Source: Pocillopora damicornis
Lineage: Eukaryota
DNA length: 61,873 nt
Direction: 5' to 3'
NCBI RefSeq assembly: GCF_003704095.1
Contig: NW_020847647.1
Coordinates: 1 to 61,873 of the forward strand
In this document: positions 1 through 26,624 of the stretch, in pieces
Layout: every line of letters starts with the position of its first letter
Position numbering within the stretch: the stretch's first letter is position 1
Program-made: the position numbers and the translations under genes
Notes under the pieces: generated by a model
What the model was told of the DNA's origin: nothing
What the model saw: only the letters and a program-made list of their open reading frames with translations
Database searches by the model: none

Positions 1-1085
1 ATAAGAATCCATGTGACTCATGGCGAAATCAAGCGGATTATTTCCTTTCAGAAGGGAGGAGAAGTTTGTAAATTGCGCCCTCATTTCCTCCAAACCTTCT
101 CTGATGTGTTATCGGGTGATATTGCTCCTGAGCATGTCACTTTTCAAGAGTATCTTGGGGACTTTCAAGACTTTGTGGAACTTCCTTCAGATGCAACGCT
201 CGACAATGACATCAAAATCCGAGCCGTAACATTAAAATCGCTAAAACAGGTACTTTCTGTCTACAAATGCAGTGTGCAAAAAAAGCATATCACAGTAATA
301 ATAAAATAAAGAAACAAGTAAACTATGTGATTATGTCAAAACAGGCATGAACGGCAAAAAAAACATCCATGTCCAATCAGACCGTCAATTTGCTCATGAA
401 TGAGTGCGAACCTGTCATTATTTATCTATATTTAACACATTCAGCTCATTCACTGATAAATATAATACACAAGGATTAGTGAAATGCGTTCGATCTATAT
501 TAGGAATAATTTCCAGTTTTGATCCAGTAATTTCGGATTTTCATCTCTTCTGTGGGTTTATCTCGTGTATTATCTCTCAATCAGTAAATAATGCGTGAAG
601 ATAGTGTGATACAGACAAAACGTCACTAAAAGGTCTTTCATTTCCTTGGATAAAATAGAGACGGTTACAGATGGCAAATGATTGGCATACTATTAATGTT
701 TGTTGTACGTTGGCTTCACATATTTATCTGAGCAGTTAAGCTTTAAAAGTACCTTAATAACCTGTCAGTAGGTCATTTTTTCGTATCTTTAAGCATTAAT
801 TAAAATATTTTGCCACATTCCTCCCTAGGCTGCACAAATATCTTCCGCTGAGATTCAACAAGACATGGAACTCCAACGGTGGCCCCGATTGTGGCCCCAT
901 TGTCACTTATTGTATCCATGTTTTCCAATACATGATTTAGGGCCGGGTTCGCCGATGTTTCCAAGGCTTCATCCAATCAAAATAAATACTACATACCAAC
1001 TTTGGAGCCCAGTCAGCAAGATAAACGATGGTTGCATTGAACGTCATTCGCACAATAATATAGTAAATTGTAAAGGGAATTTCAA
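1..1085 (+). CDS. Partial gene, copy A: ubiquitin/PB1-like N-terminal domain plus start of a divergent FGF/IL-1-like beta-trefoil (5' end outside window, 3' end lost in gap 1086-1185)
   Basis: Exon <1-249 (HGEIKRIISFQKGG...FQEYLGDFQDFVEL...KQ|gt, phase 0) splices in frame to the exon starting at 829 (ctag|GCT; AAQISSAEIQQDMELQRWPRLWPHC...TTYQLWSPVSKINDGCIERHSHNNIVNCKGNF). It is clearly paralogous to the minus-strand copy at 1186-4137. Confidence 0.7.
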
Positions 1086-1185
1086 NNNNNNNNNNNNNNN
1101 NNNNNNNNNNNNNNNNNNNNNNNNNNNNNNNNNNNNNNNNNNNNNNNNNNNNNNNNNNNNNNNNNNNNNNNNNNNNNNNNNNNNN

Positions 1186-4137
1186 TCAGCATTTTTCACC
1201 AATGTTGCTTTTCCAGTGTGATCGCAACCCAGGTATAGGTTCTTATCGTTCTTGTTTTGGAACATGGTGTAACTCCAGTAGTAAAGGGGCAAAAAGATAC
1301 ATTTATCGTCGAGTGGCACTCCAATTTGTACCTCCTGTTAAGGTAGAAAACTAGCAAATCCAACCTTATTCTCTGTTTTTTTAAGTTAGACTTTTACTAA
1401 TCATAGAGATGACAGAAGAAGTAATCAAAACTTTAAGTGGAACCATTTTCCTTGTAAATTATTTGATAATAAGTTATCAGTTTCAACATAAAACTTGGTT
1501 GTTACAGATAAAAAAATCAAGGCCCGGCGGGATACCCGTGCCTCTAAGCATCTATCGAGGTCAAAACATGTGTAGTTGTGACACGGATGTTAGTAACCTA
1601 AAGTTAAGCTAGGTCCAAACATTAAGATGGAATAATTACAACAGGCCAACTTTAATTGGTGAGATTGTAGCACAATGTCAGTCAGTCAGTCAGTCAGTTG
1701 GTCAGTCAGTCAGCCCGTCAGTCGGTCAGACAGTCATTCAGTCGGTCGGTGAGTCAGCTAGTAAGTCAGTCAGTCAGTCAGTCAGTCAATCGGTCATTCA
1801 GTTAGTCAGTCGATTGGTTATTCAGGCAGTTGGCTGTTCAGTCGGTCAGTCGGTCGGTCAGTCAGTCAGTCAGTCAGTCAGTTAGTGGGTCATTCAGTCA
1901 GTCGGTCATTCAGTCAGTCGGTCATTCAGTTAGTCAGTCGGTTGGTCGGTCGGTCAATCTTTAGAAACAGGACGTAAGGTGCTAAGGGAACTGTAGTGTT
2001 CGTCGATGGGGTGGGAGTATCATATGAGTTGATAATGTGAATTGGCCCCGTAAAGAGTTCTTAAACTTAAAGCTGCTACTTACTGTTGAGGTAATGTCCT
2101 GTCCTTCTGCATTTCCAGTCAGTACATAGTCCTTTCTATCTGAACTATTTTTAAACTGAAGCGCCACGTAGAAGGTCAAAATGCTTGTTTCATCAATAGC
2201 TTTCATAACAGCTAAAGGAAGTGAAGAAAAAAACATTTGTAATGACCAACTGTTTGCTGACATGGATAGGATTCAATGGATTACTTGAGCATGTACATGT
2301 GTTAAGTCAAAGGGGAGTTTAGTTAAACAGGCCGAGGAATGTCAGACTATAGTAATGAAGATGACAGTAATGATAGAAATGATGTTATAATGTCAATGAT
2401 AATTATTATAATGAGAATGTGTAGATAGGGAAAATTAAAACGACAACGAGAACGGAGACAATGACGATGACGACGACTATGGTAATAGTGATGGTGATGA
2501 TGATGATGATTTCCCAATCATGTCCTTGTTCTTGCTAAAAAGTCGTAACGTCAAACTTACTGTTAATTCCTCCGTTGAAATTTCCTTTGCAATTCACTAT
2601 ATTAGTCTGCGAATGACGTTCAATGCAACCGTCGTTTATCTTGCTGACTGGGCTCCAAAGTTGGTATGTGGTATTTTTTTTGATTGGATGAGGCCTTGAA
2701 AACATCGGCGAACCCGGCCCTAAATTGTTTATTGGAAGCCATGGATACACCATGTGACAATGGGGCCACAATCGGGGCCACTGTTGGGGTTCCATGTCTT
2801 GTTGAATCTCAGCGGAAGATATTTGTGCAGCCTAGGGAGGAGTTTGGCAAAATATTTTTAATTAGTGCTTAAAGTAAAAGTTTAAAATAAACGTTAACAA
2901 GTGTTAATAGTATATCAATCATTTGCCACATGTAACCGTCTCTATTTTATCCGAGGAAATAAAAGACGTTTTATTGACTTTCTGTCAGTATCACACTATC
3001 TTCACGCTTTATTTACTGATTGAGAGATAATACACGAGATACACCCAGAAAAGAGATGAGAATCCAAAATTATTGGATCAAAACTGGAAATTATACATTG
3101 GATTTTGCTACGCCGAGACAAAAATATCTCGGCATTCCTAAGGTAGATCAAACGCACTTCACTAATCCTTGTGTATTATATTTATCAGTGAATGAGCTAA
3201 ATGTGTTCAATACAAATAAATAATAACAGGTTCGCACTCATTCATGAGCCAATTGACGGTCTGATGGGACATGGATGGTTTTTTTGCCGTTCATGCCTGT
3301 TTTGACACAGTTTTCTAGATGTTAGTTATTTTCCTTCTTACTTTAGGTACATTTACTGCATGTTTATCGTCAATAAAATAATATGTACTTATTGACTTCA
3401 TAGGAGAGACGTAAGGGTAAATATTTGGCTGAGGTCATGAAGAATCAAATATTCTCTCTTTTTGCCCGGACCTAACTCGTTCAATATCATACGACCGCCA
3501 CGTTATGTCTTTTTACATTTGCTTCCTGCCTTTTGCATCGTGCATTGCCGTACGTGCGTAATTTCTAGGACCCTCCCGCACCATCTCGTACGGCCCTCTT
3601 ACGGGGATTTTTTAAAATCTTTCAATAAAAGCCTTTGCACGCGCAGATGCTTCCGAAAAGATGAATCAAGTTAAAAGAACGTCAATTTCAGGTCTTCTGA
3701 CACAATGTTGCTTCACTAGAACATCTCATGAGGTACCCTGCAAATGAGCAGTATTTTATTTATTTATTTTTTAACTTTCCATGCCTATAGGCTCCTGTTT
3801 CTGGCTATTTGGCCGTACTGAGCTGAGATTAAGGATATTACTGTAAAACGTGTATACCTTGTTCTCGTTCTTTAGAATGACTATGGCTTTCAGCTTGTCA
3901 TTTTCTTCCAACCCTAGGTCATGTTTGACTTCCACATATTCATTGAAGTTGTGATCAAATTTCTGAAATTTAACATTCCCCGGAGCAACATCTTCTGAGA
4001 GAATATCAGAGAAGGCCCTTAGGAAATGATGACGAAAGGTTTTCAAATCGTCTCCCTTCTTAAAGCGTATAATGCGCTTAGATTCCCCAAAGGTCACTAG
4101 AGCTTCAAGTTTACTCTCCTTTCCATTGCTCAATTTC
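1186..4137 (-). CDS. Partial gene, copy B: ubiquitin/PB1-like domain plus divergent FGF/IL-1-like beta-trefoil
   Basis: In-frame GT-AG exons: 4137-3858 (LVTFGESKRIIRF...FQKFDHNFNEYVEV), 2831-2561 (..YQLWSPVS..VNCKG.., phase 1), 2211-2084 (VMKAIDETSILTFYVALQFKNSSDRKDYVLTG.., phase 0) and 1334-<1186 (EVQIGVPLDDKCIFLPLYYWSYTMFQNKNDKNLYLGCDHTGKATLV). The last three exons have the phase-1/phase-0 intron pattern of FGF cores, with CxF and YLG..G motifs. The start exon was not resolved and the 3' end runs into the gap. Confidence 0.7.
1677..1956. repeat. Degenerate (GTCA)n/(GTCG)n tetranucleotide microsatellite (intronic)
   Basis: Tandem gtca/gtcg units are directly visible. Confidence 0.95.
2350..2510. 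repeat. Degenerate (GAT/GAC/AAT)n trinucleotide low-complexity tract (intronic)
   Basis: atgatgatgatgat and gacgacgac runs. Confidence 0.7.
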
Positions 4138-4992
4138 CTGTGAGGCAAAAAAAGTTTGTTTGAAAAGTTTGGTAAGATAATTGTCAGTAGCGTAAGACTT
4201 TCGCGTACCCCAGTCCTATTCAGATAACCACTTTCGTTGAATTTCTCTTATTGAAAAGAAGTGACATGGAAAGGAGATGAAAGGAATATGAAAAAAAGGT
4301 TATGATTGCAGATACAGGCAAACCGTTACACGGGTATGATCACGCAATCTCCATCCCAAGGACCGTTCACCATCCATCGCCGTGTTTTAGAACCAAAACA
4401 ATGAAAGGTCAGCCACATTTAAGGAAAAAATTTCGAGGGGAACTGATCTTTTTAATTAATTGCTAGTCGCAAATCATAACTTTGCAGCGCGCCTATTGAG
4501 CTATCCAGTTATACATTCTGAAGAAATGTGTTGGGACTCTGATGTGTTGGGACTATGCAGTGCAATCGCATAAGAGTCCCAAGGTAAGAAAGATAGCTTG
4601 TAGTTGTCGAAGTCGGATCTAAAGATTACATGGATGTGTGTGACTAAACTTGGCAATTTGTACGACAGTGTCTCTCTTTTCTCGATACTGTTGTGAAACC
4701 ATTCCCAACTTAAGTTTTTGGACACAGGAACTGTTGGCGGTGACTAAGTCCTTGTATTGGTTTCAACCTTGAATTGAGCCTGCTGAACAGGAAACTTAAT
4801 TTTTTTTACGATCCCTTAAAGACGCCAAAGTGAAACACGTTTTGTTCTAAGAGTGAGTTAATCATTAGAGACATTAGGCATATTCGAGACATTCAACAGA
4901 ACCTTTTCAACGAACAATCCTTCTTCTAAGACTCCCTTCCCTCCTCCCCCCTCCCCCACGTATGCAAATCAAAAGAAATAAAGAAATAGGGA

Positions 4993-5491
4993 CCTTAATA
5001 TACCCCGATTCCGTTAGACGGCTTTTACCGGTAGCCGTACGCGTGAAATGTGGCGGGAAGATCAACTCAAGTAACCCGGACTAAACATGGGAGGACTGGG
5101 AATAACTTCTTGACTTTTGGTAAACATGGCGGCTTTTTGGCCACGTAAGTTTGATAAAGTTCACAAAAATGGTTGGTACAATATTGTCTGCCAAAGGAAT
5201 TTTTCGACTTCGAACCAGTCTCCACCATTCGTTGCTTCCAATGACCAGTCAGCTGGTTTTCGGTAAATTTTTCTTGGTATAACACCGATTAGGCAGCACA
5301 AATTGACTTACACTTTCGTTCTTTTGACTTTTACACTTTTCTGAACGTCTTTTGCTGGTCTTCTCAGCGCGTTAAATGCCATCTACCCTGGATAAACGGC
5401 TAGGTTATCTTGTAGTGAGATGATGTCATTACCAAATATGGTCAAATATGGCGCCCTACCCGTACCCGGTGCGGGTCGGGGTATCTTAAGG
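4993..5491. mobile_element. MITE-like element bounded by terminal inverted repeats
   Basis: ccttaatataccccga (4993-5008) matches the reverse complement of tcggggtatcttaagg (5476-5491) at 15/16. No transposase ORF inside. Confidence 0.45.
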
Positions 5492-7289
5492 CTTTGTTTT
5501 GTTTAGAATCACGGGGTTTAGTTTCTTAATCATCTTGGATACGAGAAAGAATGTTTGAAGATCAGTATTATTTTTGAGCCTAATCAGGAGCCCATCATGG
5601 CTCCTGGCTTAATACAGTAGCAGGATTTTTCTTATTTTCCGCCAGAAAGATTATTTATAGCCACTTGATTTACCTCTTCAGAACCGGAATTCCATCGTGG
5701 TGACGCAATGATTTGTTTCCATATAGGGTTCCTAAGGCCCTGGCACCCTGAAACACCCAAGATCTCCGTGTAATAACTGCCATACTACTGTGGAAGTTTC
5801 AGAAGAACTGTCGGTAACAAATCATATAGCGATACCAAATAAGCACATCTGATCAATGATCATAATTATGGTAAAATTCGCCTAAAAGACACTCCAGATA
5901 CATTTATTTCTACAACAGACCTTGAATCCAGTGTAACCAATAGTTTACAACGACTTGCACGACGTTGATGCCTTATTTACGGGAGTGTTGTGATAAATAA
6001 GCAGTTACGCGACAAAAAAAATTATAGCGAAACTTGCAGAGCGTGGACAATCAGAACGTGAAAGTTAACATTTACACTTTGAAAACCAGAGAAGCGAATT
6101 GTACGAAACACTTGTTGCCATCCCACTCTGCCCGCCGGGTTTTTTCGGTGACAGTTTTTCTTAGAGGTGGGTTAAAGCTTACTTAAGGTTACATTAATTT
6201 CTTTCGCTTAAAGAAAAGGAAATCACATGCGATAAGCCCTCAGACCTCAGACAACGAGATTCATTACAGTTCATTGAGCTGATCCTCTTATGCAACCTGG
6301 TTGAATCTCGCTCGTAAGAAAAACTCACGAGAAAGACGAACTGACGCTGGAAGAGCTTGAAGAGCACAAGGAAAAGTTAACGGTAAGTATGATTCCCCTC
6401 AATCAATAAAACATCGCCATCTTTAACTCGGGTTTATCTTTCTTTTAAAGGGAACCGGTTAGACATTACTGATTTGTCTCACTTTCCTTTATTCCCTATA
6501 TAAACACGAGGAGAAACTGGACAGAAATTATAACCTGTGTTAAGGTAGCCTTCAGAATAAGCGTCATTTTCTGCTTTTTTAGACGAGTGGAGTCACACAC
6601 GAGAAGAAGGGCGCGAGTCTCACCCTTCGAGCGCGTATCGCTCCTCGTGTCTCACTTGATCGTGCATAATGGAGCACCGGAGAAATAAAGAACAGTTTCT
6701 GAGGCCGCATAAGTTTTTGCATTCGTTTTCAGCTCCTTCTCACTTGGTGCATGGTATACCCCAGACGTACACTTCGTAATAATTACGAAGTTATGTTTAT
6801 ACGAAGTTATGGTTATACGAAGCTCTCAACCGCCTCATGGATAAAATAATGACTGATAACACTAACACTGAGATCTTAAAGCAAAAATGTCCAATCCCAA
6901 CTTAAATCTGACGTGTGTAATGGTAGCTGGAAGAAGACGTTTTGCAATGTTTGTTAGCGCATATGTGTACTTACTCTTCTTTATTCGCTGTTTTCCGGGA
7001 TACTCTAACAAGCGAGGTCGGTCGGGCACAGCGCATTCTGAAATACGAGTTGGTCTGCTACGTTTAAATAGCTGTCCTGTACTTGACAGGAAGCTATTGA
7101 CCCATTTCTGACCCAATTTCCGACGCCGACATTGCTCGCGTGCTTATTGATTTGTCATGGAAACAGTTGGGCCCCAACAGAAGTTTTCTAGTTTGCGGAA
7201 ATATCGGAAAGCCATGTACTGTCACGGAACTTTTGTTCCAATATTCATATTTTCTTTCCTTGAGCAGTGCCACAGCGAATACTTCTTTC

Positions 7290-10200
7290 ATGTGAAAGTG
7301 CCAGAGAGATAAGACAGATCCTCAAACCTTATTATTATCTTAGAACCGGATAAAGTTTGAGATTAACGTTTTGAATGAGTCACCAGCTTTAATTAAAAAC
7401 AGCCCTGTTAGAAGTAGATTCAGTAGTTTCTCGGTCAATCCACAACACTCCTCACGATGCGTTGAAATGTATGTTTAAATATGTAGAAGTCTTGAAACGC
7501 TTTGTCCCTTTGTGCGCTTACCAATCAAGAAATAAGCAGTAACAAACTCAAATAAGCGTTGTTCGCTGAACCCCATTGTTAATATTTTCCTTAAGAGGAC
7601 GTTTTATTGTCGTCCGGTTTCGTTTTCTTTCCTGAAAATGCCTCATGCGTTACAGCTGCGTTGCACGGTCCGGGGTTTGTCTCTCAGAACTGTACTCATT
7701 TTTACCTCATGTAAATACAGTAGTTAGAGGTCGTGAATAATTGAAATGCTTCCCTCTTTTGTGTAGAGTTTTCTTCGGCACAACCCGTCTTTTCACCGGG
7801 AAATTTTCTTGAGAGGTAACAAAATATACTGTCTTGGAGAAGGGTTGCTTTATAGTTCGATTCCGGGAAAGATAACACAAGGGAATATTCCAATCTTTTT
7901 AAGGTTATGCGGGGTCATATTTAGCTGTAGGTGATTTACGTCAAATTTTACGTTGATGAGTGTTTAGATGTCAGTACATTCACCGAATGGTTACTTATAA
8001 ATGTTGTAGATGATCACTAACTTTTGCGAAATAGATATCAAATTTAGTGGGATAAATCAAATAAACATTGAAGCAGTAAGTAAGTACTGTATTGTCTTAT
8101 TATTGTTCCGCACTCACGACAGATGAATTGACCGGAAAGGTCTACGAATTGCAAAAATTGTTGAGAATTCGTCCAAGATTATGTACTGTGTGTGCTATAT
8201 CATGGCAGTGAAACAAGGATTGCAAGTAATAAATAACTCCATAGAATCACGCAAAATTATGCTAATGAAGTAATGCAATAAAAAAATCAGACAGAGTCAT
8301 AAATAACGAGAGCATAGTTTCAAGTTAACCGTCTGTTGGGGCAGAGGTCTGTTTGGGTCTGGAGTGCGACTGCGACCACAAACGCGAACACCGCTAACGC
8401 GAGTTTCTGCGCGGCTTTCCAGTGGAAAGATCGAGCAAACCACCATTTATACCAGTGATATCTCTCTCTTCTTCGAAGTAACACCGAGAAACAGTTGGAC
8501 TACATGATGGGATTGATAGAAGATGATATTTGAAGAGGAGACAAACAGATGCCACAAAGATACNNNNNNNNNNNNNNNNNNNNNNNNNNNNNNNNNNNNN
8601 NNNNNNNNNNNNNNNNNNNNNNNNNNNNNNNNNNNNNNNNNNNNNNNNNNNNNNNNNNNNNNNAAGTTGTGAAAAAATCAATTTTCATATTCTCATTTCT
8701 ATAGGATCAAATGCATTCACGCTATCGTATCTTTGTGGCATCTGTTTGTCTTCTCTTCAAATATCATCTTCTATTAATCTCATCATGTAGCCGAACTGTT
8801 TCTCGGTGTCATTGCTAAGAAGCGATGAGATATCACTGGTATGAATGATGGTCTATGCGATCTTTCAAGAGGAAAGCCGCGCAGAAACTCGTGTTAGCGG
8901 TGTTCGTGTTTGTGGTCGCGGTCGCACTCCAGACCCAAACAGACCTCTGCCCCAACAGACGGTTAACTTGAAACTATGCTCTCGTTATTTTTGACACTGT
9001 CTGAATTTTTTATTGCAATACTTATTTAGCACGATTTTGCGTAATTCTATGGAGTTATTTATTACTTGCAATCCTTGTTTCACTGCCATGATATAGCACG
9101 CACAGTACGTACTCTGAAACGAATTGTGTAAAAATCTTAAAAATTTTTGTATTACGTAGACCTTTCCGGTCAATTCATCTGTCTTGAGGGCGAGAAAACC
9201 GAGAAAACATTTAGTTGTTTTACACGTCTTCTAAGTATTTAAAACTTGTAACGCTCTACATTTCTAGGATTCTTGGTACTATGTACGTCGTGCATGAAAA
9301 CTCATTTTCCATCGAAGTTTTCGTTCTCTGGCTCGGATAAATTGGATTTCGTACGTGATATTGTTCGTGGAAGCCGGCAACTAAAAGGGAAAAAAGTTTC
9401 TTTGTTCTCTTTCCCAGAATTCAGTGCCTGAATTGAATTGATTTTTTCCGCTTGTAACGCTAACTTCGTAACTGACTGCTTGAGTTTTATCAAAAGTACT
9501 TACTGACTCAAGGTCTATTTGAATTATTCCACTTGATTTGATATTTATTTCGCATCATCCACAACATTTATAAGTAAATGCTGTGGTGGCTAAAGTGTTA
9601 CTCAGAACTACTGACATCTAAATACTCATTAACTTAGAACAATAACAAACGTCAATTTGACGTAAAGCACCTTCAGCTAAATATAACCTCGCATAACCTG
9701 AAAACAATTGGATTATTCCCTTGTGTTACATTTCCCGGAATCGAACCATAAAGAAACCTTTCTCCAAGACAATATATTGTGTCACTTCTCAAGAAAATTT
9801 CCCAGTGAAAAGACGGGTAGTGCCGAAGAAAACTCTACACAATAGGTCTTAAAATTAGGAAGCATTCCAATCATTCACGACCTTTAACTACTGTTACATG
9901 AATTAATTTTGAGTGCAGTTTTGATTGATGATTGAAAACGGAAATGACGGGACAAACCCCTTACCGTGCAACACGGCTGTAGCGCCTGAGACATTTCAGG
10001 AAAGAAAACGAAACCGGACGACAATAAAACGTCTTCTTGAGGAAAATATTAACAATGGGGTTCACCGAACAACGCCTATTTGAGCTTGTTACTGCTTATT
10101 TCTTGATTGGTAAGCGCACAAAGGGACAAAGCGTTTCAAGGCTTCTACATATTTAAACCTACACATCGACGCATCGTGAGGAGTGTTGTGAATTGATCGA

Positions 10201-10339
10201 GAAACTACTGAATCTATTCCTAGCAGGGCTATTTTAGAGCTGTTGACTCACTCAAAAGGTTAGTCCCAAACTTTATCCGGTTCCAAGCTAATAATAAGAA
10301 GGTTTGAGGATCTCTTCGCTCTCTCCGACATTTTCATAC
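7290..10339. repeat. Large inverted duplication, arms about 7290-8563 and 8727-10339, centred on gap 8564-8663
   Basis: Collinear reverse-complement matches along the arms, e.g. 'cagatgccacaaagatac' / 'gtatctttgtggcatctg' and 'gatcctcaaacctt' / 'aaggtttgaggatc'. The right arm has about 300 bp extra near 9190-9485. Confidence 0.9.
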
Positions 10340-10384
10340 GGTTAAAGTTGAGTATATACTGCGATGATCTTCATTTGCTTAAAA

Positions 10385-10540
10385 AGGTAATTTAGTGTTA
10401 ACAACTGGGTTGAAAACGTAAATTAGCCACCGTAAATCGCTCTGACGAAGGGCTAACGCTCGAAACGTCAGCTTTTTTACTCTTTACGGTGGCTAATTTA
10501 CGTTTTCAACCCAGTTGTTAACACTAAATTACCTGCTATA

Positions 10541-10585
<45 letters not shown>

Positions 10586-11669: not shown

Positions 11670-14600
11670 ATGGTAGCCAACAAACCATGGGTAGAAAGCA
11701 CAACACAGTATGTGCTAATATTAGTTGCTGCTGCCTCAGTAATCTTCCCTTCCATCATGTGCCAAGTCTGTCATTATAAGCCAAGGAAAAGTAAGTTTTT
11801 ATCCTTATTTAGACATGAGAAATTATGTTATGAATGGCAAAGAAAAATGTTTCTTTCATTGTGTTATATTCATCATACATTAGCATACACTGTCCCTTTT
11901 TGAAAGGTTAATAACAACTTTTCACCGTAGGCAAAGAGAGTACAGTTTAATTATCCCTGAGACAAAGCTAAGGGGATTATTTAACAATATTCACTGAGCC
12001 TGAAGTGCATAATTGTTTTAGTTTTGAAAATCTGCTCAGGTGCTTTTGAATTCTGTGGAAAATTCTGTAAAAAAAAGAAGCATTGTGCATAGTTTGTCAC
12101 AATTGTGATGATTACCTGTATCAAGATGAGCAAAAAGTTTGAGCAAGTTCATGTAATTCAATCAGCAAAAACTTCATATCTTTCTTTTGAAAAGTGTTCT
12201 GCCAAAGGTGGTAGCATATTTTGTGCTCTTCCCAATTGAATTTCCTTCTATTGAGCTTATCACTTCCTTGAAATCAGTGACAAAATGTAAGGCAGCCATT
12301 TTGAAATTTAGTGACCCTGCTATAATCACCTGGTGCGAGGTGATTATAGTAAGATGTGATGTAATCCTCTACTGATCAGAGTGTGCTGTAATAATAACCC
12401 AAGCAATATTGTTCTAAATATATTTCTTTTCTCAATTATGAATATTTGTAACAATCCAAGCTCTTCTTTTATGGGAAGATGCCTCTTCACCTTTTTTATT
12501 TCATTTAATTTGACTTTTTTGCTTTTTCTTTTTACCTCTCCTCAAGCTGAACCTATCATTGAAATAACAGCCAGTGAATTGCGTCTTCGCAAACCTGTCA
12601 ATGTCACTTGCATTGCACGGGAAAATGAGGTCTATTCGCACAAGTATGATTCCAAGCCAATTTCAATTTACTGGTTTTATAATGGAAATGAGGTCAAACA
12701 TAAATGTTCCATGGGTTTACCAGTTACCTCTCTGACATGTTCTTTGGTTATTGACTCCCTGACATCAAAGGTGCTGGGTAACTACACTTGCAAAGCAAAT
12801 ACTTTTGATCTTCACTGCAGTGTTAAACACTATGAAATTGATATTGATGGTAAGAAAGATTAATTTTAATAGTGTGATTATAATCATCTATAAAATGAGC
12901 AGTTGCAGTAATATTATATTGGAATATCACCAACTAGTAATAAATAAAAGTATCGGTTATTAAACCACACAGAGCACATGGATGACATTGAAGAACACTG
13001 CCAAGCTTTAAAGAAACAACCTGAACAATTGAACCGAGAAAACAAAATGATAATAATATGTCAACCAAACATCAGTCAACACCTAACTGTTAAGTTATTC
13101 CTCAGGAATATGAACCACCTGTAATAAAATTGATGTCTACCAGAGTGTTAGAGAGGGGGGGGCAAGGCATTGAACAATAGCTGGGACACAAACTCTCATC
13201 AAGTTTTTTTTAAACACCCTGCTCCCTCCTAGTCTTGAGTTTTTTACAGGAGGTCCAGATTTCTCATTTTCATAGAACATTGAAATTGAGTTTAAGGAGG
13301 ATAATTTTTTGTTTAACAGGTGTGATAAGGAATGTAGTAGCTGAAAGTTTAAATATATCATCCCTTAACAATCGATACATGTATACAGCTTTTTTGAGAA
13401 ACCTTTTTGAAAACCTGAAAGAGCACAAAACAATCTTGAAAGTTAAATTCTGGGTATCCAGTAATCAATAATTTTTTACATTTCTACAAGTCAAAGAAAT
13501 ATGAAATAATTCATGAAACCTACAGTGTTTTGTCCTTACAGTGATGTTTTCTCACATTTTCCTGAAATGGTGAGGTCAGTAAATTGTAACCTGAAACTAT
13601 CAAAAGTATCTTTCAAATTTGTCACACACACTTTTACTGTTTTTTCCTCCAACCTTTCTCAAAACAGCTGTATGTGATATGATAATGTTGTGGACTCTGT
13701 AATGAAGTTATCTAACTTATAGTGCTGTCAGTAGTTGAAAGGGTATGCATGCGGGTTGCTGTGGACCAAAAGTAATCTTAAAAACTGACTCTCAAAGTCA
13801 AGTGCTCCACCTTCCTCCTCTCTAGATGTACTACCTGCAGAGACAACTGAAGCTCCAACTTACCAGGGTATTGTCCCTGGGCCTAATACAACAAAAAACT
13901 GCAGTGATTATGGCAAAGGCCAGTGTGTGAGCAACAAGAATTCTGCAAATGAGACATCACAAGGAGGAGGAACCAATTACTCTCCAGAAACTGCTAGTAA
14001 GTATTTGCAAAGAAAACCTGTTTTAACCCGTCACACCCTAATATCAGTATGCATATTATCAACACTGTTCTCTATACCTTTTCTAAGATGCTAAAAAGGA
14101 GAATTTGTTTAACAATCAAGGGCTTCTCCAGTTGATGATCATTTCATTCCTTCTCTTGATCTTAATGTTTGACTTGAAAAATATTGTAAGAAGAAATTAG
14201 ACACAAGTCACTCTTAGGGGTCAGAAGGGGTAGCAGATATTTTTTTTAGCAAAAATGTAGTATTATTCGTTTGTTTGTGGTTGCTTTTCAACTGATTCCT
14301 GTAAAATGTTTCGTTCATTTCTTAACATAATGTTGTATTATTCGTTTCTTTGTGTGTTTGCTTTTCAGCTGATTCTCATAAAATCTTCTATTCATTTCAT
14401 AAAAGAATGTTAATAGCTGTCAACCAGATCCAGCAAATGTAATACAAAATGCATGAAAAACAAATTTGAAACTTTGAAAACTGACGTATAGCACGTCTAT
14501 GTATTCCTCTTCAGTTTTTAGTACACCGGAACCACGCAAATTTTTAAACGCCAGTGGAAGTTCAGAACAAAGCATGATCGCAGTCGTGGTACCCAGTGTC

Positions 14601-17600
14601 ATCTCGGCTTTGGTAATTTTAAGCATTGGAAGTTTTCTGTGGTTTCGTCGAGGAGCTCGACGGGTGAGTAACGAATTTGTAACATTTTTTTTTACACAAT
14701 TGATCTTGGGTTCTTTGTGCGGATAACTACAGCTAGGTCGTAAGGGACTAGGGCGGAGGGGTCAAAGGGTGTTCGTTACCTCCCCCCCTTTCTGCTTGTC
14801 CTCTTTCTCTTGTTTATTCAGAAGACACCCTGACATGCTTGCAAATGTCGGTAAAGTACTGTCGAAGAACGCCTCTCCATCTGCAAAATCATACCGACAT
14901 GCACCCACTAGCATACTGTATGTGCATCTGTCATCAACCTCTAGTGTAACTTTTTACTTGACAATTGTGATGAGGAGGGGGCGGTGGGAGGGGGGATGGG
15001 GCAAACCCGGAGGCATGAAAGACAGTATTAGAAAATGAGAGAATTGGTGTTCCACAAATATTTCGTTTTCAGACATTTCGGCTTAATTCAGATGTTGATG
15101 CCAAGCTATGTTTATCCTCTCCGCTTCAAGCATACTTGGCAGAACTTTGTTGAGATAATCACTGTTTGTGATAAAGAGTAATGTGTAGACTTATGTAAAT
15201 GAGATTAACAATTCCAAGCACCACTTGCCTAGCGCCAAAAGATGCGTAATGTCTTACATCTGCTAACTGTCAAAATCCAGGCAGAGTACAAGTACAGCTT
15301 CTTTGCTTAATTTTCTGGAGGAGAATCACTATAGATAAATGTTTAATGTCATTTTAAACTTCAAATCTCACCTAATATCAAAAAGGACTTTTTTTTTCTT
15401 GGATTTAGAGAAGGAACAATGAAAGTCCTACTTCTGCCAATGCAAGTGAATATCTTTTGGAAGTAATACCACTGCATGATAGGTCCTCATCCCATGGCTC
15501 AACCGCGCCATTACGTTTGCAAGAAGAATGCAAAACTACGAACAACTCGAACCATATTGAGACGTCTCTAGTACCAGATATAGAGCCTGAAACTTTGCCT
15601 CCGAGTACCTCGGTCAATCCTGTCGGGTATTCATTGTTAACGGAAAAATGGGTTGAGAATCCTAATAAAAAATGTTTCCATGGTACAAAGTGGAGCTCAG
15701 AGCGAAACGATTCACACAATTTCCGTCCAGAAAGACCACCAAAACCCGCCAAAAAAGATAGCACAGAAAAGCAGATGAACTGTTTATGCATGACAATGGC
15801 AGAAAACTTAGGAACTACGCAAGACAATGTAACAAGTAAAGACAGTGGTTATAATAGCGCAGAGAGCAGAGAGAGCATTCCCGAGATGCCTCTGGAGAAC
15901 AAGAACACCTGGCAAATCGAATTGGATGAGCTAAAAATCCTTGATAAAGTGCTCGGAAAAGGAGAATTTGGAATCGTTAAAAAAGGGCTTTATCGTGGTA
16001 AAGAGGTGGCAGTGAAACAGTCTAAAGGTAAGAAACTGATAACGACTTGTCTTATTTTCCATATCTATTGTTTGTTCTTACGTGTAACAGACAGAGCTTT
16101 GTTTCAATTTTTTAGAGGCGTACTCCTTAGTTCCAACACAACCTCATGGAAATCCTTCACAAGGGAACAATGTCTAGATTTCCACAATGATTCAGTCCTT
16201 AAAACAACAAGAGTTTGTTTGTGTGTTTATATGATATATCGTTCTTATTTTTTATTTATTTATTTTTAATCTTGTCACGTGGTTTAGTTACGTTCTCAAG
16301 GTGCAACAAGGACGACCTACTTAATGAAATAAAGATGCTGAAGCAGGCTGGAAGACATCCAAACATAGTCAGTTTTATTGGTGCCTGCACTCAAGAAGGT
16401 ATTTTGTCCTTTTTTCCAAGCACGATCTGGGAGAAAAACGCTGAGTCACGATATACGATATACAATATATTTTTGGCTGGACTCCTTTCATTCAACAGAA
16501 TGTAGTACTACTTGTACTTATTGCACCGGACTTTACGTTTTCCCCTTTATCATCATTGCAAATACCTAAGATACAATTAACGCAATTGTAATCAAATAGA
16601 TGAATATAACCACTTTTTGAAGCAGAAAACAAGCTAAGTACTTGCAAATTGAGCTGTGATCCCTTCAGGGAAAGTACAAACAAACGTTGTTTTTCAGTGT
16701 GTTTTTCAGTGTGTTTGTTTTATGGAAACTAACACTCGAATTTGGCTCACGAGTTTGAAGTTCAACAGATCTATGTTTTTAACCCTCAGATAATATTCTG
16801 CTAATAACAGAGCTGGTATCTGGAGGTACCCTTGAAAGTCTGTTGAGGTCTAAACCTCGTAATGGGGGGCAAAACCAATATGAGAACTTAAACTGTGGGC
16901 TAACTGAGCGAGAGCTGTTGCAAGTTTCTCTTCAGGTGGCCTGTGGAATGCAACATTTGGAAGAAAGAAAGGTACGACAAAGGTTAACCAAGAATAAAGT
17001 TTACTCATTGGGGGTGAACTTTTATTTTAGCAAGCCTGTGGTGGCGTTTGACACAAGATCAGGACGACAAGGCCCAAGCCTTGGGCAGTTCACTGTGTTG
17101 TGTGCTGTTCACTTCACAGAGTCTTTCTTCTATCTGGAAAATAAATGATAATCACAAAAAGACATCAGGATAATGTTAGGAAATGCTAGAAGTTTGCTCA
17201 TGATGGTGACACAGTGAAGCAAGAAAAGGGTATTAATAGTCACCACAAGCTAATATAGACTCAGTGGAAGCGAAAATAGAGCATCGCATTTCCATTGAAC
17301 TCTAACTTTTACTAGTGTGATTCACAGCAAGTATGAGAAAGCGAAACAGTGCTTTTTTTGAACACGCAATGGAGGCTTGTCGCTTTTTTGATCCCCCACT
17401 TTTCATTTCGTCAAGTGCCTGCGTGTGAATCATAAATCTGTTGACACGTGTGTCTTTCTCTTCATCAGTACATTCATCGCGACCTTGCGGCGAGAAATGT
17501 TTTCATTGGTAAAAACAAGGTAGCAAAAGTAGGAGACTTCGGATTAGCGAGAGACATTTCAGATAGAGGCATTTACACCAAGACTTCTGATGTGAGTACA

Positions 17601-19631
17601 TTTATAAGATATGTAGAGGTCGACGCTTATCGTTTCACTAATCTTTTTAACTCAGCATATCTGTACTCTCTTCAACAGCTACTATTAGAAAGCTTTTTCC
17701 AGCTTTTGTAGGGTAGCGTCCTAATAGCTGTGCGCGGTTGGAAGTTTAGATCTTAAACAAATAAACAGTTAGAAAATTTTTAGTTTTAAAAACCTTGAAA
17801 TGATAAAACATTGTATCTACATTTTAATGTATCTTTGTTTTGTCAGGGCGGAGTTCCATGGAGGTGGTCTTCTTTAGAATCATTAAAATGTAGGGTTTAC
17901 ACCTCCAAAAGCGATGTGTAAGTTTATGATAATTTTGATGTCTTACGCGCTTTGAAAGTTTTTATAACAAAATATCGAATCAGCACCCTTTTCGAAAAAG
18001 CAGACTCCCCCCCCCCCCCCCCNNNNNNNNNNNNNNNNNNNNNNNNNNNNNNNNNAAGTCTGGTCGATCACTCTCCTTTCTTTGTTTGTTTGTTTTTTTT
18101 ATCCAATATAATCGAATCTACATGTAACTTTATATCATTGCGAGACAACATTACATTACTTACATTATCCAAATTCACGAAATGGTGCATTCGCGCTAGC
18201 CCTGTTTCAGTTTGAAGACAAGCTAATTGGGAAAATGATTACTAATTAACAGAGCTGCTATCAAAACCTTTTGGACAAGCTTTCTATCGTACAGTTTTGT
18301 TTTTATTGTTGTTTATACCCCTTTTTTTTTGGGGGGGGGGGGGGGTTGAGACCATTTAAATAAGCGTCTTCTCAGAATGAACAGTTCCTCCCATGTGAAA
18401 TACAAAGTAATAACTAAAAACGTAGTGTTTGAATTATGGGACAAACTGCGTCAGGTTAGCTTTATGGAACTGTTCGCCGCAATTGATGGTGGACTCTCGT
18501 AGAATTCTTTTGTAGTTAATTAGAGTCGCAATTATTTTAATAGGTAAAATAACTCAATTATACAATTTTTTCTTAATGATAGATGGTCGTTTGGGATTTT
18601 GTTGTGGGAAATTTTTACTTATGGTAAGTTTGTGTAAACAATTTTTAGAAGATATTACATACCAATTGTTCCTTTGAAATCAAACTGAAATTATTTTTAT
18701 GCATGTCGTCAAAAAAATTAAAAAATTAATGTCACTCCCATCGAATAGATAATATGGCGAGACTGTGTATTTCATTGTTGTGCAAGAATGTTCTTAGATA
18801 TGCCTTTCAAATTGCTCGCTTTGTTCCAGCTCGAGAAAAATTCTTTGATGTAAGATTTTGGCCATACAGTAGGAAACGTGCGTTGTTTAGATGGTTGTTT
18901 ATGAGTATCGGCCTCGTTCCATTTTAAGGCTCTTAGTTCTGAAAAAAAAAAAGAACAAAACAAAAAGACAACTTTGCACAAGGAAACGAATGCAACCATT
19001 TCTTGACTTTAACACTTACATATTATCCTATCAGGTGAGGTTCCCTACCCTGATATACGTGCAATAGAGACCCTCATTACGTGGCTATCGTCTGGTAACC
19101 GGATGCCTTGTCCTCTAAATTGTTCCAATCAACGGTGGGTTAGAGAACTATCTGTAGCGTCTTCTCGACCTTGGTCATTTTCAAGCAGTCAATTTCCAGA
19201 AATGTTGTTAACAGACAGATTAGTATTTGACTAATCTCTAGTTGTATTTGTAGGTATAAGTTGATGAAGTCCTGTTGGCAAGAAAATCCATTAAAGAGGC
19301 CCACGTTTGCATGTATTGTAGAACAACTGGAAAAGATCTTAAGCTTAGAATACAAGGTATGTATTCACGTCCAGAATGAAACTTTCCTCATTTTCATTTT
19401 ATTTGCTTGTACAGAACGATTTTCCTCTTTGGGTTGTCTCTGTTTACCGCAGTAATTGTACTCATTGACAGTCTCTTCGGTTGAACGGCTAACTAGTGAA
19501 TGGACAACAAACTATATGTTCAACTTTGTTCTACCTCGCCCTTTTTTAGTTGATTTGTTCATCTTTTTCCGTTTCAGAGTGAGTATGCTAACCTTCAGAG
19601 TGATGACTCCGGTAACCAAGAAGAAGTATAG
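11670..19631 (+). CDS. FGFR-like receptor tyrosine kinase with a single Ig domain (13 coding exons, about 715 aa)
   Basis: Exons 11670-11790 (signal peptide), 12547-12849 (Ig: VTC..IYWF..GNYTCKA), 13826-13996, 14515-14663 (TM + RR), 15409-16027 (juxtamembrane, GKGEFG, VAVK), 16288-16398 (LLNE, HPNIV), 16790-16971, 17469-17591 ([15 protein letters not shown]), 17847-17917, 18583-18623 ([12 protein letters not shown]), 19035-19134, 19254-19356 (CW..P..RPTF) and 19578-19631 (SEYANL..stop). All phases match and total 2148 nt. AATAAA at about 19772. Confidence 0.93.
14023..14230. mobile_element. Short MITE-like repeat in RTK intron
   Basis: Begins ttaacccgtcacaccctaa and ends ttaggggtcagaagggg (degenerate inverted termini). 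About 200 bp and non-coding. Confidence 0.5.
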
Positions 19632-22415: not shown

Positions 22416-23157
22416 ATCTGTAACGAGGAAGATAATAGAGAACACAGACCCCAAAAGTTTAAGTTTGACCGATTTGGTATACTTATCAATCCGACAGGTA
22501 TACCTTTTATAGGATATCTCTTCTCCATATTAGTAAATTCTTGACGTAACGTTCTTTCCAAAAATATTTATTACTCGATACACAACATAGGATTAAAGGA
22601 AAGTTTAACTTGGCCGTTAAAGTGAAACGGGGTAGCACCAATAGGAAACTCAAAAGTTCTGGCGTGTGAATTAACGAGAACTGACAAACCGAGGTCCATG
22701 TACAACCTCCTGATTCGTTGAATTGCGAGAATTAAAGTTCAGAAATATAGTTTGCACGTGACAAATCTTTCTCTTTAACTGACTTTCCCGACAAAATAAA
22801 CAGTGACGTCTTTCATTTTCTACGTCAATCAACATCAATGTGATGCATTTGTAATGAATCACAATGACAAGGTTGTGATATGTGCTTGGAGGCTTTCAGG
22901 TAAAAACTGAAACTTTGCTCATATAACCAGATCCATCAATTCGCAGAAACTAGGACTTACGTAAAAATGGTGATTACAAAGCTTACTTAGTCACTTTTCT
23001 TATTTGCCCTATGCATTTAAGGTTTTGTATCCATTTTGTTTATTATCTCTTTGACATTTCCGTTTCCTACGCCAGATGATATGCACTCATCGACTGCGAA
23101 CATCATTATCGAGAGCAAAAATACTCTCCCGTTCGGCCCAACCAGGCTCGCATAGAA

Positions 23158-23560
23158 ATTATTTTTACAGCCAGCACATACAAACTTATAAACCACATGT
23201 GAACGGAGCCCGTCAGGGACAGGATCTTTCACTCCAAACAAGTTACCAATCTTGAAAGAAGAGAAAACTAGCTTGTCATTGCCAAGTCATTGCAATAGCG
23301 CTTAATAAAATGGCGAATCTTATTCAAAGAGAACAACCCTCTTTGAATCAACAATTACATAATGTAAATCTAAAACTATCCTTTTAATTCTGACACTTTC
23401 ATGCTTTGCCTTTTTCTCGTTGTCACCATTTGTCGTATTAGCTTTTTTCTACTTATTCTAAATTCAACTTCCGACGCTTTGTACATTAATTAACTGAAGA
23501 TGACAGAAGTTTCTGTGGAAACGTGTTTTACAAACTCAAACGTTTTGTCGTTTTCTTCAA
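23158..23560. mobile_element. Truncated Penelope-like retroelement remnant with inverted structure
   Basis: Minus strand 23158-23320 encodes KLVFSSFKIGNLFGVKDPVPDGLRSHVVYKFVCAGC, the start of a PLE GIY-YIG region. Plus strand 23323-23388 reads IQREQPSLNQQLHNVNLKLSF*, a PLE-type ORF end, followed by a degenerate hammerhead (CTGAAGA..GAAAC at 23494-23522). Confidence 0.75.
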
Positions 23561-24560
23561 ATAGAAAATTGTATTTAAAAGCAATTCAAGTGTACTGTCT
23601 TGTTCTTTCTGATATTCTCTGCCACGTTCTGTATACATGTATAATTGTTTGTGTGAGATTTGTATAAGGAGCATTTTATCTGTATATTTAATTTTCTTTC
23701 AGCAAGACTAATTAACTAGCAGTTTTATGGCTTATCTTTCCTTTGCACCAAAATGTTACAATTCCAGAGTGTGGTTTATTTTCTTAATTAACTGCGCTTC
23801 TTAGTTTTGTTTTTTTTTCCCATTTATATGTGTATGATGTACACCTTTCAGTTTTCAATGATATCGCGGTTTCAAGGTCACCAGTTCGTATTACTTTCGA
23901 AAATCGATAATATGTAAGTTTTCTAAGACACGAAAGTTCTGAAAAACTGACAAAGTGGACATTTGCATCGGTAAAAAAGAAGTCCTCCATCAAGGTACGC
24001 ACAGTATAGTTTCATTTGTTAACCTTTCAATGTACACGTAGATGATCATTGATGACGATTTACGTAGATGCAAAAGAGCCATTCTATCTCGCATCTAGTT
24101 TCGAAACTATAACGATTAGAAAGTTATAAATGTATAGGAGGGGAGGGGACACTCGTCCAATTGTTTCAGTGTATGGTTAAAATAATAACAAAGTCGTGCT
24201 TCGAAAAAAGAATATAAGACTAAACAAGACTAAAAAAAGCCATGGAAATACGAAATACCTGTCGGTCATATGCTCTTGTGAACGTAGATAGTAGCTAGGA
24301 AACTGAAAGTACTGTCCTAAATTACGTCCAAGGTCAGTCCACCTGAATTGTATGAATATCAAAAAATAATGCAGATATCATAATTATTCATATCAGTTAC
24401 ACTATGGACCAAATTACCACAATGTGTCAGATCGAATGTGTGATCTAATCATTTGATTGAAAGAAAGCTGCCATTAAACCATTCTAAGACGTGACGACAA
24501 AAAAACTTAAAACAAAACAAACATTGAAAATCTGCAATATCAACGGTTATATGGACAAAG

Positions 24561-24775
24561 CGGAAGTCTTTCGAGTTGAGTTGCGACCCGGATGTAATTA
24601 AACTGAAACGTCGTGGACGTTTTTTACAAGCAAAAAATGTAGTGTTAAGTCAAATGCGAGCTATTTTTTACTTTAAATCTTCCGGTCCATCGTATATAAA
24701 AGCCTGTGAGTAGTAAAAGGGACTTTCATTTCAAATTACCTGCTAGTCAGAACAAGAGTTCCTGCCATCCTAAAG
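24561..24775 (+). promoter_or_regulatory. TATA promoter and probable non-coding first exon of the FGF-like gene
   Basis: TATATAAAAG at 24693-24702, Inr-like TTCATT about 30 nt downstream, donor aag|gtattt at 24775/24776, and acceptor tttcag at 25209 before the ATG exon. Confidence 0.6.
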
Positions 24776-25277
24776 GTATTTATGATTCCTTGCTGTGCGT
24801 GTAGATTTAGTGGAAAGGTTTTTTTTTTATGTTGTCAATGTTCATTGATTACTTAACGCGCTTAAATGGAACATGTTAAGTTACACAATGCAATAACAAG
24901 AGGAAAACTACAGCTATAATCCTCATCGTTTCAATATTCTTGTGTTATAAACGAAACAATTAATCAAGTAAGTGCAATGCCAGAGATCACGATGCGAGCT
25001 CAACTTTTGATGCTAACTAGCGTAAATTTCTCGGGCATTCAGTTATTTAGCAGTCTTGATTTTCTGCCTTCGTTTAGTGAAAGCATCCTCAGGATTTGGC
25101 AGCGAACCAGATTGACTCCTCTGCACTAACGACGAAAACACTCCAATCTACGGTGTTTAATTTCCTTTTATTCGATGGTGATTACTTTTTTATTGGTTTT
25201 TACTTTCAGCTTTCTTTCTGGGGGAGAATCTTTCAAAGTAGACTCAGCCTTACGCATCAAGAAAGATAACCGAAAAC

Positions 25278-26624
25278 ATGAATAATGGGTTGACATTTCG
25301 TGCTTGGTCTTTGAGTCGACAAAAATACTTGGTCTTAACTGAAGATGGTGGAAAGAAGACTCCTAAAATCAGAGCAACAGGCGATGATGAAGGAAAAGAA
25401 AGTAGGTGTAACTGTTCCTTAATTTCGTATTGGTTTTAATTGGTTACAAATTGATAAACTTTGAAATACTTTGCAGGCGGTCCGACCTTTCTGAAAGAGT
25501 GGCGGTGATGTTCACCGGCTTAGCCATGGTAAAAACTCTTACAACACAGCGGCTAGGCCAATAAATGTGTTCGAACTAAATTATCTCATAGATGACACAG
25601 GTTTTAGAACTGAATTTTTTTTTTCAGGTCAATTCACAATGGTACTGAATACCGCAATCGAAACTTTTAACGAAAATTCCGCCCACTTAGTGTTTACAGC
25701 ACAGGACGGTCAGAATTATGCTTTGATTACCGACTTAAAAAATGGAACTGTTTCGTTTACGGTCAGTATAAACACATGTAACTTTAAAGGAAACCAAGGT
25801 GAAATTAACGAATGTTTATCTAACTCCGATTTCATTAAAAGCGACTCATTAGTGTGAGAGATCGGTTAAGTGCGTGTGCGGGCCTGAAAGAAATTAAACT
25901 AGTTACAAAAAGGGCGCCGCTTCAAGTACACTTACGAAGATACTTTGAATTTCAATGCACTGTATTAAGTTCAGATCGCAAGTCTAATGAAGATAATCTT
26001 GTAGTGTTTATGAAAATAAGATAAATATCGAATTTGGTACAAAACATAAAGTTTCGAAGCTTGGTAATGATTTTGATAAAACGAATTTGCAAACTTTCGT
26101 ATCCTCTATCGTTTTGCATTTTTCGTAACTTTGTACAGGGGCCTTTTTTTGAAACAGAAATCAAGAAGAAACAACTATTTCTGTATTGGTTAAGAATAGA
26201 AAACTGAGTAGAGAAGCTGCATTGATCTTTTACGGAAACTTGCCAAATTAAACAAACTTTTCCGTGAAAGAGAAACTTCTGTTCAAACCAGATAGCACTT
26301 TTAGTTCACTGAGGTGGTTCTTTTACATATTTAAGGTGTTCCACTTCAGCCTCAAAGCATTCTGTAAAAAAACTTCTCTAAAAAACTATGATTTTTTTTA
26401 AAATTAAAAATGTTCTTTCCTTCACACAGAAGTACGAAAAATCTTCAGAACATATTGGAGCCTTCGTTAAGGAGTCATTGGGTGAGCAAGGACCAACCTA
26501 TGCTCTTAGGGTTGCACAGAGTCAGAGTTGCATTGCTGCCAACAAAGATGGCTTTCTGTCGCTGAGACCATTTGAGCGAATTTATCCTCATCCAGACACC
26601 ATTTTTGTTCTATCTAAAGTTTAA
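25278..26624 (+). CDS. Leaderless divergent FGF-like (beta-trefoil) protein, 150 aa, 3 coding exons
   Basis: Exons 25278-25401 (MNNGLTFRAWSLSRQKYLVLTEDGG..IRATGDDEGKE, phase 1), 25628-25761 (SQFTMV..HLVFTAQDGQNYALITDLKNGTVSFT, phase 0) and 26430-26624 (..AFVKE..TYALR..CIAANKDG..DTIFVL*). Size, intron phases 1/0 and the FxxE..Y..IAxNKDG..F-hydrophobic pattern match the FGF core. No signal peptide. AATAAA at 26781 and 26875. Confidence 0.75.

Follow-up and report, generated by a model that had tools for sequence, protein, structure and literature searches.

FGF and IL-1 are beta-trefoil ligands that bind immunoglobulin (Ig) ectodomains. Leaderless proteins that join a PDZ domain to a trefoil, the IL-1anc proteins, occur across Eumetazoa, and their genes are linked to putative IL-1R genes (PMC13736523). 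Invertebrate IL-1 is missed by sequence searches (PMC13736523), and conserved genes of the IL-1anc locus are reported to have been lost in corals (preprint 10.1101/2025.07.17.662885). We analysed a stretch of 61,873 nucleotides from the stony coral Pocillopora damicornis (contig NW_020847647.1, positions 1 to 61,873; "the window"), for which a first-pass annotation had proposed a co-inherited and lineage-specific signalling module. Its parts were three FGF-type beta-trefoil genes (1-1085, 1186-4137 and 25278-26624), an FGFR-like receptor tyrosine kinase (RTK) with one Ig domain, and a soluble Ig protein resembling the RTK ectodomain. We refer to the two leftmost genes as genes A and B and to the RTK, Ig and third trefoil genes as the right-hand trio. 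Almost nothing is known of cytokine-like signalling in corals, and the ways in which corals sense damage and mount immune responses are relevant to bleaching and disease.

With a probability of about 0.55, the window holds ordinary genes restricted to stony corals, some of which form an old conserved neighbourhood, and a signalling module is not demonstrated. The left side would then consist of two convergent copies of one coral gene family, one of them a fragment and both cut by a gap. The RTK would signal with a ligand encoded elsewhere, canonical FGFs being one possibility, and the secreted Ig protein would derive from the ectodomain of the receptor's family. The trefoil proteins would stay inside the cell or exit unconventionally, and any link to the kinase would be putative. 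Adjacency of the genes would reflect slow rearrangement, perhaps together with a control region common to the Ig and trefoil genes.

The third proposed trefoil gene, at 25278-26624, has been borne out as a leaderless beta-trefoil gene. It is intact, with three exons encoding 150 amino acids (Table 1), and may be missing from the P. damicornis annotation. P. verrucosa and P. meandrina have nearly identical proteins of 154 amino acids, recorded as "uncharacterized". When 1.84 billion representatives were scanned in full with HMMER, about a dozen relatives were returned, all small, and the named ones come from Desmophyllum, Oculina and Acropora. None of these relatives has a signal peptide; here, as for all the trefoil genes, this was judged by reading the N-termini. 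Pfam and PDB sequence searches were blank for this family and blank or spurious for the trefoils as a whole, and PD40 and fn3 repeat-protein matches in the representative search were rejected as compositional. By sequence, the protein belongs to a family outside Pfam. The 90%-identity cluster of the protein contains P. verrucosa and P. meandrina records and no P. damicornis record.

Structure prediction was informative for this family. An AlphaFold 2 model of the P. verrucosa orthologue (P0010; 12-sequence alignment) had a predicted local distance difference test score (pLDDT) of 71.7, a predicted TM-score of 0.70 and 12 strands. Foldseek, which the first-pass annotation had named as a check of the fold, returned 86 matches at E<=1e-3 with this model, and the leading ones were all beta-trefoils. 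With VIA-align, the model matched HA33 at Z 16.4 (root-mean-square deviation 2.3, 134 residues), Symfoil/FGF1-derived designs at Z ~15, and IL-33 and IL-18 at Z 14.9. Language-model neighbours of the protein belonged to the trefoil clan throughout (ricin-B-like, I66, fascin/FGF). We conclude, from the model of its P. verrucosa orthologue, that the third gene encodes a beta-trefoil. Differences of ~1.5 Z are too small to separate lectin-type from cytokine-type trefoils by structure. Cytoplasmic trefoil lectins and inhibitors (HA33/ricin-B, fungal lectins, I66/clitocypin) gave the best Z score (16.4) and the nearest language-model clusters, and they share with the coral protein the lack of a leader and the length of ~150 amino acids. 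Unlike the lectins, however, the coral protein has no QxW repeats (on reading) and no RicinB Pfam match.

Linkage of the trio was compared across corals, with assembly accessions assigned to species through PMC12250223. The proteins found so far all come from stony corals, in agreement with the claim that the system is lineage specific. In P. verrucosa the order is mucin, trefoil, Ig, RTK, with no further called gene between them. At the Acropora digitifera locus, kinase exons (+), Ig (-) and trefoil (+) have the order and orientation seen in Pocillopora; the split between Pocillopora and Acropora is the deepest among stony corals. The trio proteins of P. meandrina have neighbouring accession numbers on one contig, and a further ENA assembly has Ig (-) next to trefoil (+). 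In Desmophyllum pertusum, RTK, trefoil and SEA mucin lie next to one another, and no secreted Ig was detected at the locus beyond faint fragments. A Desmophyllum gene model overlapping the RTK juxtamembrane region has Ig and FN3 matches, with kinase exons just downstream. In Oculina patagonica (L031 930-22507), two copies of the trefoil gene are interspersed among signal-peptide and Ig exons of RTK-like type. This locus, which also contains a ribosomal protein S5 gene and a reverse-transcriptase open reading frame (ORF) from a retroelement, appears to be the trio after rearrangement or duplication. Across loci, the Ig and trefoil genes are head-to-head and 1.6-2.9 kb apart (2.86 kb in the window). 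Together, these data support co-inheritance of the right-hand trio, RTK(+), Ig(-), trefoil(+). From Pocillopora to Acropora, one trefoil family has thus kept the same two neighbours, an orphan RTK gene and a secreted Ig gene.

The left-hand genes have no linkage to this RTK family elsewhere. Paralogues of the gene B family (on contigs C548, C2480, C1789, C2472 and C3266) never lie on contigs of the RTK family in the P. damicornis genome, and the Stylophora orthologue of gene B lies at a scaffold end, beside a 285-amino-acid multi-Ig gene and with no RTK exon within 10 kb. The proposed co-inherited cluster thus holds for the right-hand trio in Pocillopora, Acropora and, in part, Desmophyllum, but not for the left-hand genes.

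A neighbourhood of ordinary genes is favoured by the presence of an unrelated member, the SEA mucin gene, which adjoins the trefoil gene in both P. verrucosa and Desmophyllum. Several observations weigh against that reading. Trio order and orientation are kept from Pocillopora to Acropora, yet the flanking mucin, kept in Desmophyllum, was not found in the Acropora locus. The interleaving of Oculina trefoil copies with RTK-like exons points the same way. There is also an invertebrate precedent for linkage of leaderless trefoil cytokine genes to receptor genes (PMC13736523). Conservation of the trio fits selection for linkage, and neutral retention alone falls short as an explanation.

The trio is the only part of the window for which a functional module is plausible, and even there we consider it improbable. 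In such a stony-coral cytokine-like unit, the leaderless trefoil, released unconventionally, would be the ligand through which the one-Ig RTK signals, and the secreted Ig, taken from the family's second Ig domain, would tune the response as antagonist or helper. The conserved order and orientation in P. verrucosa, P. meandrina and A. digitifera, the Ig-trefoil and RTK-trefoil adjacencies in the further assembly and in Desmophyllum, the Oculina arrangement, the head-to-head spacing, the binding of known trefoil ligands to Ig ectodomains and the IL-1anc precedent are all consistent with it. However, binding of the trefoil to the receptor is conjecture only, and a complex prediction with the RTK Ig, secreted Ig 28-160 and the trefoil scored 0.00, which counts neither way. 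The structure does not distinguish between a cytokine-type and a lectin-type trefoil, Desmophyllum has no detectable secreted Ig, and canonical FGF genes elsewhere in the genome encode candidate ligands for the RTK family. If the unit were real, corals, which are reported to have lost conserved IL-1anc genes, would have a trefoil-cytokine axis that acts through a kinase in place of a TIR receptor.

The RTK gene was read exon by exon. All catalytic motifs are readable in the exon translations (GxGxxG, VAVK, the alphaC Glu, HRD/DFG, the activation-loop Tyr and WSFG), and, judged by these motifs, the kinase is catalytically intact. Its P. verrucosa counterpart is a 715-amino-acid model with Ig_3 and kinase matches and collinear exons. 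Against the PDB, the HRD-DFG exon matched FGFR2 best (43.5 bits), followed by Tie2 (41.9) and by Eph and PTK6 (41.7), and nothing was found there for the following kinase exon. The HRD-DFG exon does not discriminate kinase families, so FGFR type is not established. The first-pass annotation was correct in describing a kinase with catalytic motifs and one Ig exon, but its FGFR-like label names only one candidate family, with Tie2 and Eph within 2 bits.

Searches of the P. damicornis genome (234.35 Mb, 4,393 contigs) showed that the RTK family is locally expanded. At least 26 similar Ig exons are present, with kinase paralogues on several of those contigs. The paralogue at C1904 43360-30190 (-) carries three Ig exons and the one at C3405 116861-126896 (+) carries two, in each case ahead of the kinase, and both combine an Ig of the type found in the window RTK with one of the secreted (P0021-like) type. 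We conclude that the window RTK is an orphan member of an expanded family and itself keeps one Ig. The paralogues, with two or three Ig domains and a tyrosine kinase, resemble FGFRs, as does the best PDB match of the HRD-DFG exon. In contrast, the window RTK has one Ig and a mucin-like stalk, its kinase exon matches Tie2, Eph and others within 2 bits of FGFR2, and the Desmophyllum model at the RTK position also has FN3.

The secreted Ig protein (182 amino acids) corresponds to the annotated gene pdam_00022637 / LOC113685934. Its gene is convergent with that of the RTK. The protein consists of a signal peptide, one I-set Ig and a basic tail and lacks a transmembrane segment, and its orthologues are 88% identical in Stylophora and 42% identical in Acropora. 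Its likeness to the Ig of the neighbouring RTK is weak (30% over 47 amino acids in the C-terminal halves, E 1e-3), and in genome-wide searches the two do not find each other. Thus, although the gene does encode a secreted single-Ig protein, as had been claimed, it only weakly resembles the RTK ectodomain. On this sequence comparison, the protein is not a copy of its neighbour's Ig. The best own-genome matches of the secreted Ig are Ig exons that stand beside RTK-type Ig exons within the paralogues with two or three Ig domains, and four of the six best matches lie on contigs with this RTK family. The signal-peptide exons of the secreted Ig and RTK genes are also weakly alike (I-x-C-Q-x-C, E 0.009). 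Because of these matches and this weak signal-peptide likeness, the secreted Ig probably descends from the RTK family ectodomain, as its "other" (second) Ig type. The probable source of the protein is thus among the ectodomains of the receptor family to which its neighbour belongs, and a small set of proteins is available for binding tests.

These data bear on whether the RTK and the secreted Ig cooperate alone, with the detached ectodomain domain as soluble co-receptor or antagonist and the trefoil as a bystander. We consider this unlikely, though somewhat likelier than a module of all three. It is favoured by the matches within the multi-Ig paralogues, by the likeness of the signal-peptide exons and of the Ig C-terminal halves, by the arrangement common to both genes (a phase-1 signal-peptide exon, then a phase 1-1 Ig exon) and by adjacency conserved to Acropora at 42% identity. 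However, identity in these comparisons is low (25-31%), Ig exons of phase 1-1 occur universally, no secreted Ig could be detected in Desmophyllum even though the RTK is kept there, and the interaction is purely conjectural.

We compared the trefoil proteins with FGF and IL-1. The queries given to search tools were single exons or orthologues taken from databases; scripts alone joined exons, to check that the frame continued. The FGF profile (PF00167) gave no match for P0010, P0009, P0015 or P0058, whereas it identified 55 exon matches in the genome, all on other contigs. When the trefoil was compared by hhalign with the last exons of the genome's own FGF genes (20 taken), the results were insignificant (E 0.004, probability 8%; E 0.087). 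The fold and the layout of the 150-amino-acid gene, with three coding exons and intron phases 1 and 0, resemble FGF, but the lack of a Pfam FGF match and the location of the FGF genes elsewhere separate the two. The label "FGF-type" was therefore dropped, and both it and the left-hand genes were removed from the proposed module. The IL1 profile (PF00340) likewise did not match the trefoil proteins, although this is weak evidence against membership because sequence searches fail for invertebrate IL-1 (PMC13736523). An (F/L)ES motif was not present in strand 9 of the modelled trefoil; this strand is YALRV in the model and FKALKV in the family. The pair of a secreted single-Ig gene beside a leaderless trefoil gene resembles IL-18/IL-18BP, and IL-18 is among the top structural matches (Z 14.9). 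However, no sequence relation was found, lectin-type trefoils match the model equally well or better, and any binding between the coral proteins is putative.

Gene B had been proposed as a trefoil gene at 1186-4137. A gene is present there and is spliced in RNA, but its true extent is 5783 to 1186 (-), in five exons, and its trefoil fold is less firmly placed than that of the third gene. RNA contigs from three independent poly-A studies contain GT-AG joints on the minus strand, and we conclude that gene B is transcribed and spliced. Joined across the five exons, the frame stays open from the start codon (ATG) at 5783 and gives ~312 amino acids as far as the gap; compared with the 300-amino-acid Stylophora RefSeq orthologue (P0058), ~18 codons at the 3' end are missing into the gap. 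In order, the product has a basic N-terminus, a domain of ~90 amino acids, a Pro/Trp-rich linker and ~150 amino acids that are probably a trefoil. The first 37 residues are rich in Arg, Lys and His, contain no acidic residue before position 30 and have no hydrophobic core, and they are conserved in Stylophora. This N-terminus resembles an organelle-targeting peptide more than it does a secretion signal. For the ~90-amino-acid domain, which is present in several short ORF calls, we found no Pfam or PDB family match, and PDZ did not match; a "ubiquitin-like" label was an impression from the strand-helix pattern only and was set aside. The Stylophora GenBank model (P0015, 274 amino acids) skips 26 residues at the end of this domain that the RefSeq model P0058 has, and the RNA-supported exon 2 of gene B contains their counterpart. 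A literature search found no mention of the Stylophora locus ids.

Several comparisons point to a trefoil in gene B. Its three trefoil exons align onto each other as repeats. In an hhalign comparison with the family of the third gene (E 3.4e-4, probability 38%), the last two repeats matched over their whole length, including a terminal YP-x-P-x-x-(I/L)-F-x-V motif. ESM features of the gene B family scored 0.86-0.88 against clusters of the trefoil clan, which we take as no more than a lead. For P0015, the alignment was built without A1-family rows, to avoid forcing a trefoil; MAFFT on exon fragments misplaced pieces, setting trefoil repeats onto one another or onto the N-terminal domain, and only one alignment (A6) was clean. 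The AlphaFold 2 model of P0015 failed (pLDDT 42, shallow alignment, too low to use), and for that reason we infer the fold of gene B, whose C-terminal ~150 amino acids probably form a beta-trefoil. Gene models are thus corrected for two uncharacterised leaderless trefoil families, with the fold of the second being the less direct.

The layout of gene B resembles that of IL-1anc: it is leaderless, with a C-terminal probable trefoil of ~150 amino acids, spread over three exons, behind a globular N-terminal domain and a linker. It also lies near Ig-receptor genes, and sequence searches are blind to it. Unlike IL-1anc, gene B has no PDZ domain, the modelled trefoil has no (F/L)ES in strand 9, no TRAF3, GCC2 or ESD was read among window ORFs of >=90 amino acids, and the neighbouring receptor is a tyrosine kinase rather than an Ig-TIR protein. 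We consider it highly improbable that the left-hand family is the coral counterpart of the IL-1anc pro-cytokines, processed at the linker, released on damage and independent of the RTK. Such a counterpart would match the described leaderless layout of a globular N-terminal domain followed by a trefoil (PMC13736523), would be in keeping with the loss of conserved IL-1anc genes in corals (10.1101/2025.07.17.662885), and would be expressed, given that gene B transcripts were assembled in three independent RNA studies. However, no PDZ and no IL1 profile match was found, the trefoil of gene B is only probable, the three marker genes are absent from the ORFs read, and the basic N-terminus might just as well direct the protein to an organelle.

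Gene A (1-1085) does not hold a complete trefoil gene. Its arms at 334-507, 506-704 and 802-1085 are 89-93% complementary to 3134-3307, 2896-3094 and 2575-2858, so that its intron and exon 2 have 89-93% DNA identity with gene B. The N-terminal exons of the two genes, in contrast, have ~43% protein identity and are much more diverged than the intron. The contig begins inside gene A, whose 5' exon would fall beyond the contig start, and only the first trefoil repeat is present because the gene runs into gap 1086-1185 from the side opposite gene B. We conclude that 1-1085 is a two-exon fragment of an inverted gene B paralogue and not a whole gene.

It is very improbable that the left 10 kb is in part an assembly artefact, with the 1-1085 copy and the intergenic palindrome (7396-10235) as mis-joins and genes A and B perhaps not beside the RTK. 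Two gaps lie in or beside inverted repeats, the contig starts inside gene A, and in Stylophora the orthologue is found at the end of a scaffold, with no RTK exons close by, all of which would fit mis-joining. However, the N-terminal exon of gene A is far more diverged than its intron, and run X15 (library type unrecorded, probably DNA) covers 1993-5900 in overlapping contigs with one break. The repeat arms are also only ~90% alike, which argues for diverged paralogous copies rather than collapsed haplotypes. The palindrome itself could be a true foldback or an assembler problem.

Table 1. Coordinates of genes, exons, gaps and repeats in the window
Feature	Coordinates	Strand	Evidence or remark
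RTK, signal-peptide exon, phase 1 donor	11670-11790	+	Exon translation
RTK, single Ig exon, phase 1-1	12547-12849	+	Pfam Ig_3 E 2.7e-6; 96% identical to P. verrucosa
RTK, Ser/Thr/Pro-rich stalk exon (~13798-13998) and transmembrane exon (~14500-14663)	13798-14663	+	Boundaries approximate
RTK, juxtamembrane region (long) and kinase exons	15409-19631	+	Boundaries approximate
RTK, kinase exons, first part	~15900-16033; ~16290-16400; 16783-16965; ~17466-17590		GxGxxG/VAVK at ~15900-16033; alphaC at ~16290-16400; HRD/DFG at ~17466-17590
RTK, kinase exons, rest	~17840-17918; ~18584-18625; ~19020-19115; ~19240-19340; end 19631		WSFG at ~18584-18625
Secreted one-Ig protein, 182 amino acids	22415-22310, 21667-21305, 20873-20794	-	Exons reproduce annotated P0045 exactly
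Leaderless 150-amino-acid beta-trefoil gene, three exons	25278-25401, 25628-25761, 26430-26624	+	GT-AG introns, phases 1 and 0; open frame
Gene B exon 1, start codon 5783	5673-5807	-	Joint 5673|4136 in three RNA studies; 37 basic residues
Gene B exon 2, complete ~90-amino-acid N-terminal domain	3857-4136	-	RNA joints 5673|4136, 3857|2830-2833
Gene B exon 3, Pro/Trp-rich linker and first trefoil repeat	2561-2833	-	RNA joints 3857|2830-2833, 2561|2211
Gene B exon 4, second trefoil repeat	2083-2211	-	Joint 2561|2211; loose RNA end at 2083
Gene B exon 5, third trefoil repeat, frame open into gap	1186-1330	-	Loose end at 2083 reads into ~1330
Gene A fragment, N-terminal domain exon (~90 amino acids), open frame	13-306	+	51% identity to Stylophora P0015 residues 51-106
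Gene A exon 2, Pro/Trp-rich linker and first trefoil repeat, gap-cut	829-1085	+	Inverted copy of 2575-2858
Assembly gap	1086-1185	.	Between convergent genes A and B; conceals coding sequence of both
Assembly gap	8564-8663	.	Near centre of intergenic palindrome
Assembly gap, 33 N	18023-18055	.	Inside RTK K5|K6 intron; spacing collinear with P. verrucosa
Imperfect intergenic palindrome, ~2.8 kb, between gene B and RTK	7396-10235	.	Arms ~87-93% complementary

Two further observations were made in gene B. RNA run X10 contains an alternative joint, 4136|5311 (-), which suggests a second 5' exon or promoter. In the last intron, a long (GTCA)n / (GTCGGTCG)n microsatellite lies at 1677-1939, near the centre of the A/B inverted duplication.

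Among ORFs of >=90 amino acids in the 27-62 kb part of the window, which were read with no profile search, we found mucin-like genes and one oxidoreductase exon only, and no TRAF3, GCC2 or ESD; the cnidarian IL-1anc microsynteny with TRAF3, GCC2, SOX3 and ESD was thus not seen there. Several mucin-like, Ser/Thr-rich genes lie at 28363-33902 and 36600-48000. In both P. verrucosa and Desmophyllum, pieces orthologous to the first mucin-like gene of 28363-33902 adjoin the trefoil gene, and the product there has a faint SEA match. The exon at 59889-60203 (-) carries a GxGxxG pyridine-nucleotide oxidoreductase motif and is AIF/FSP1-like by eye.

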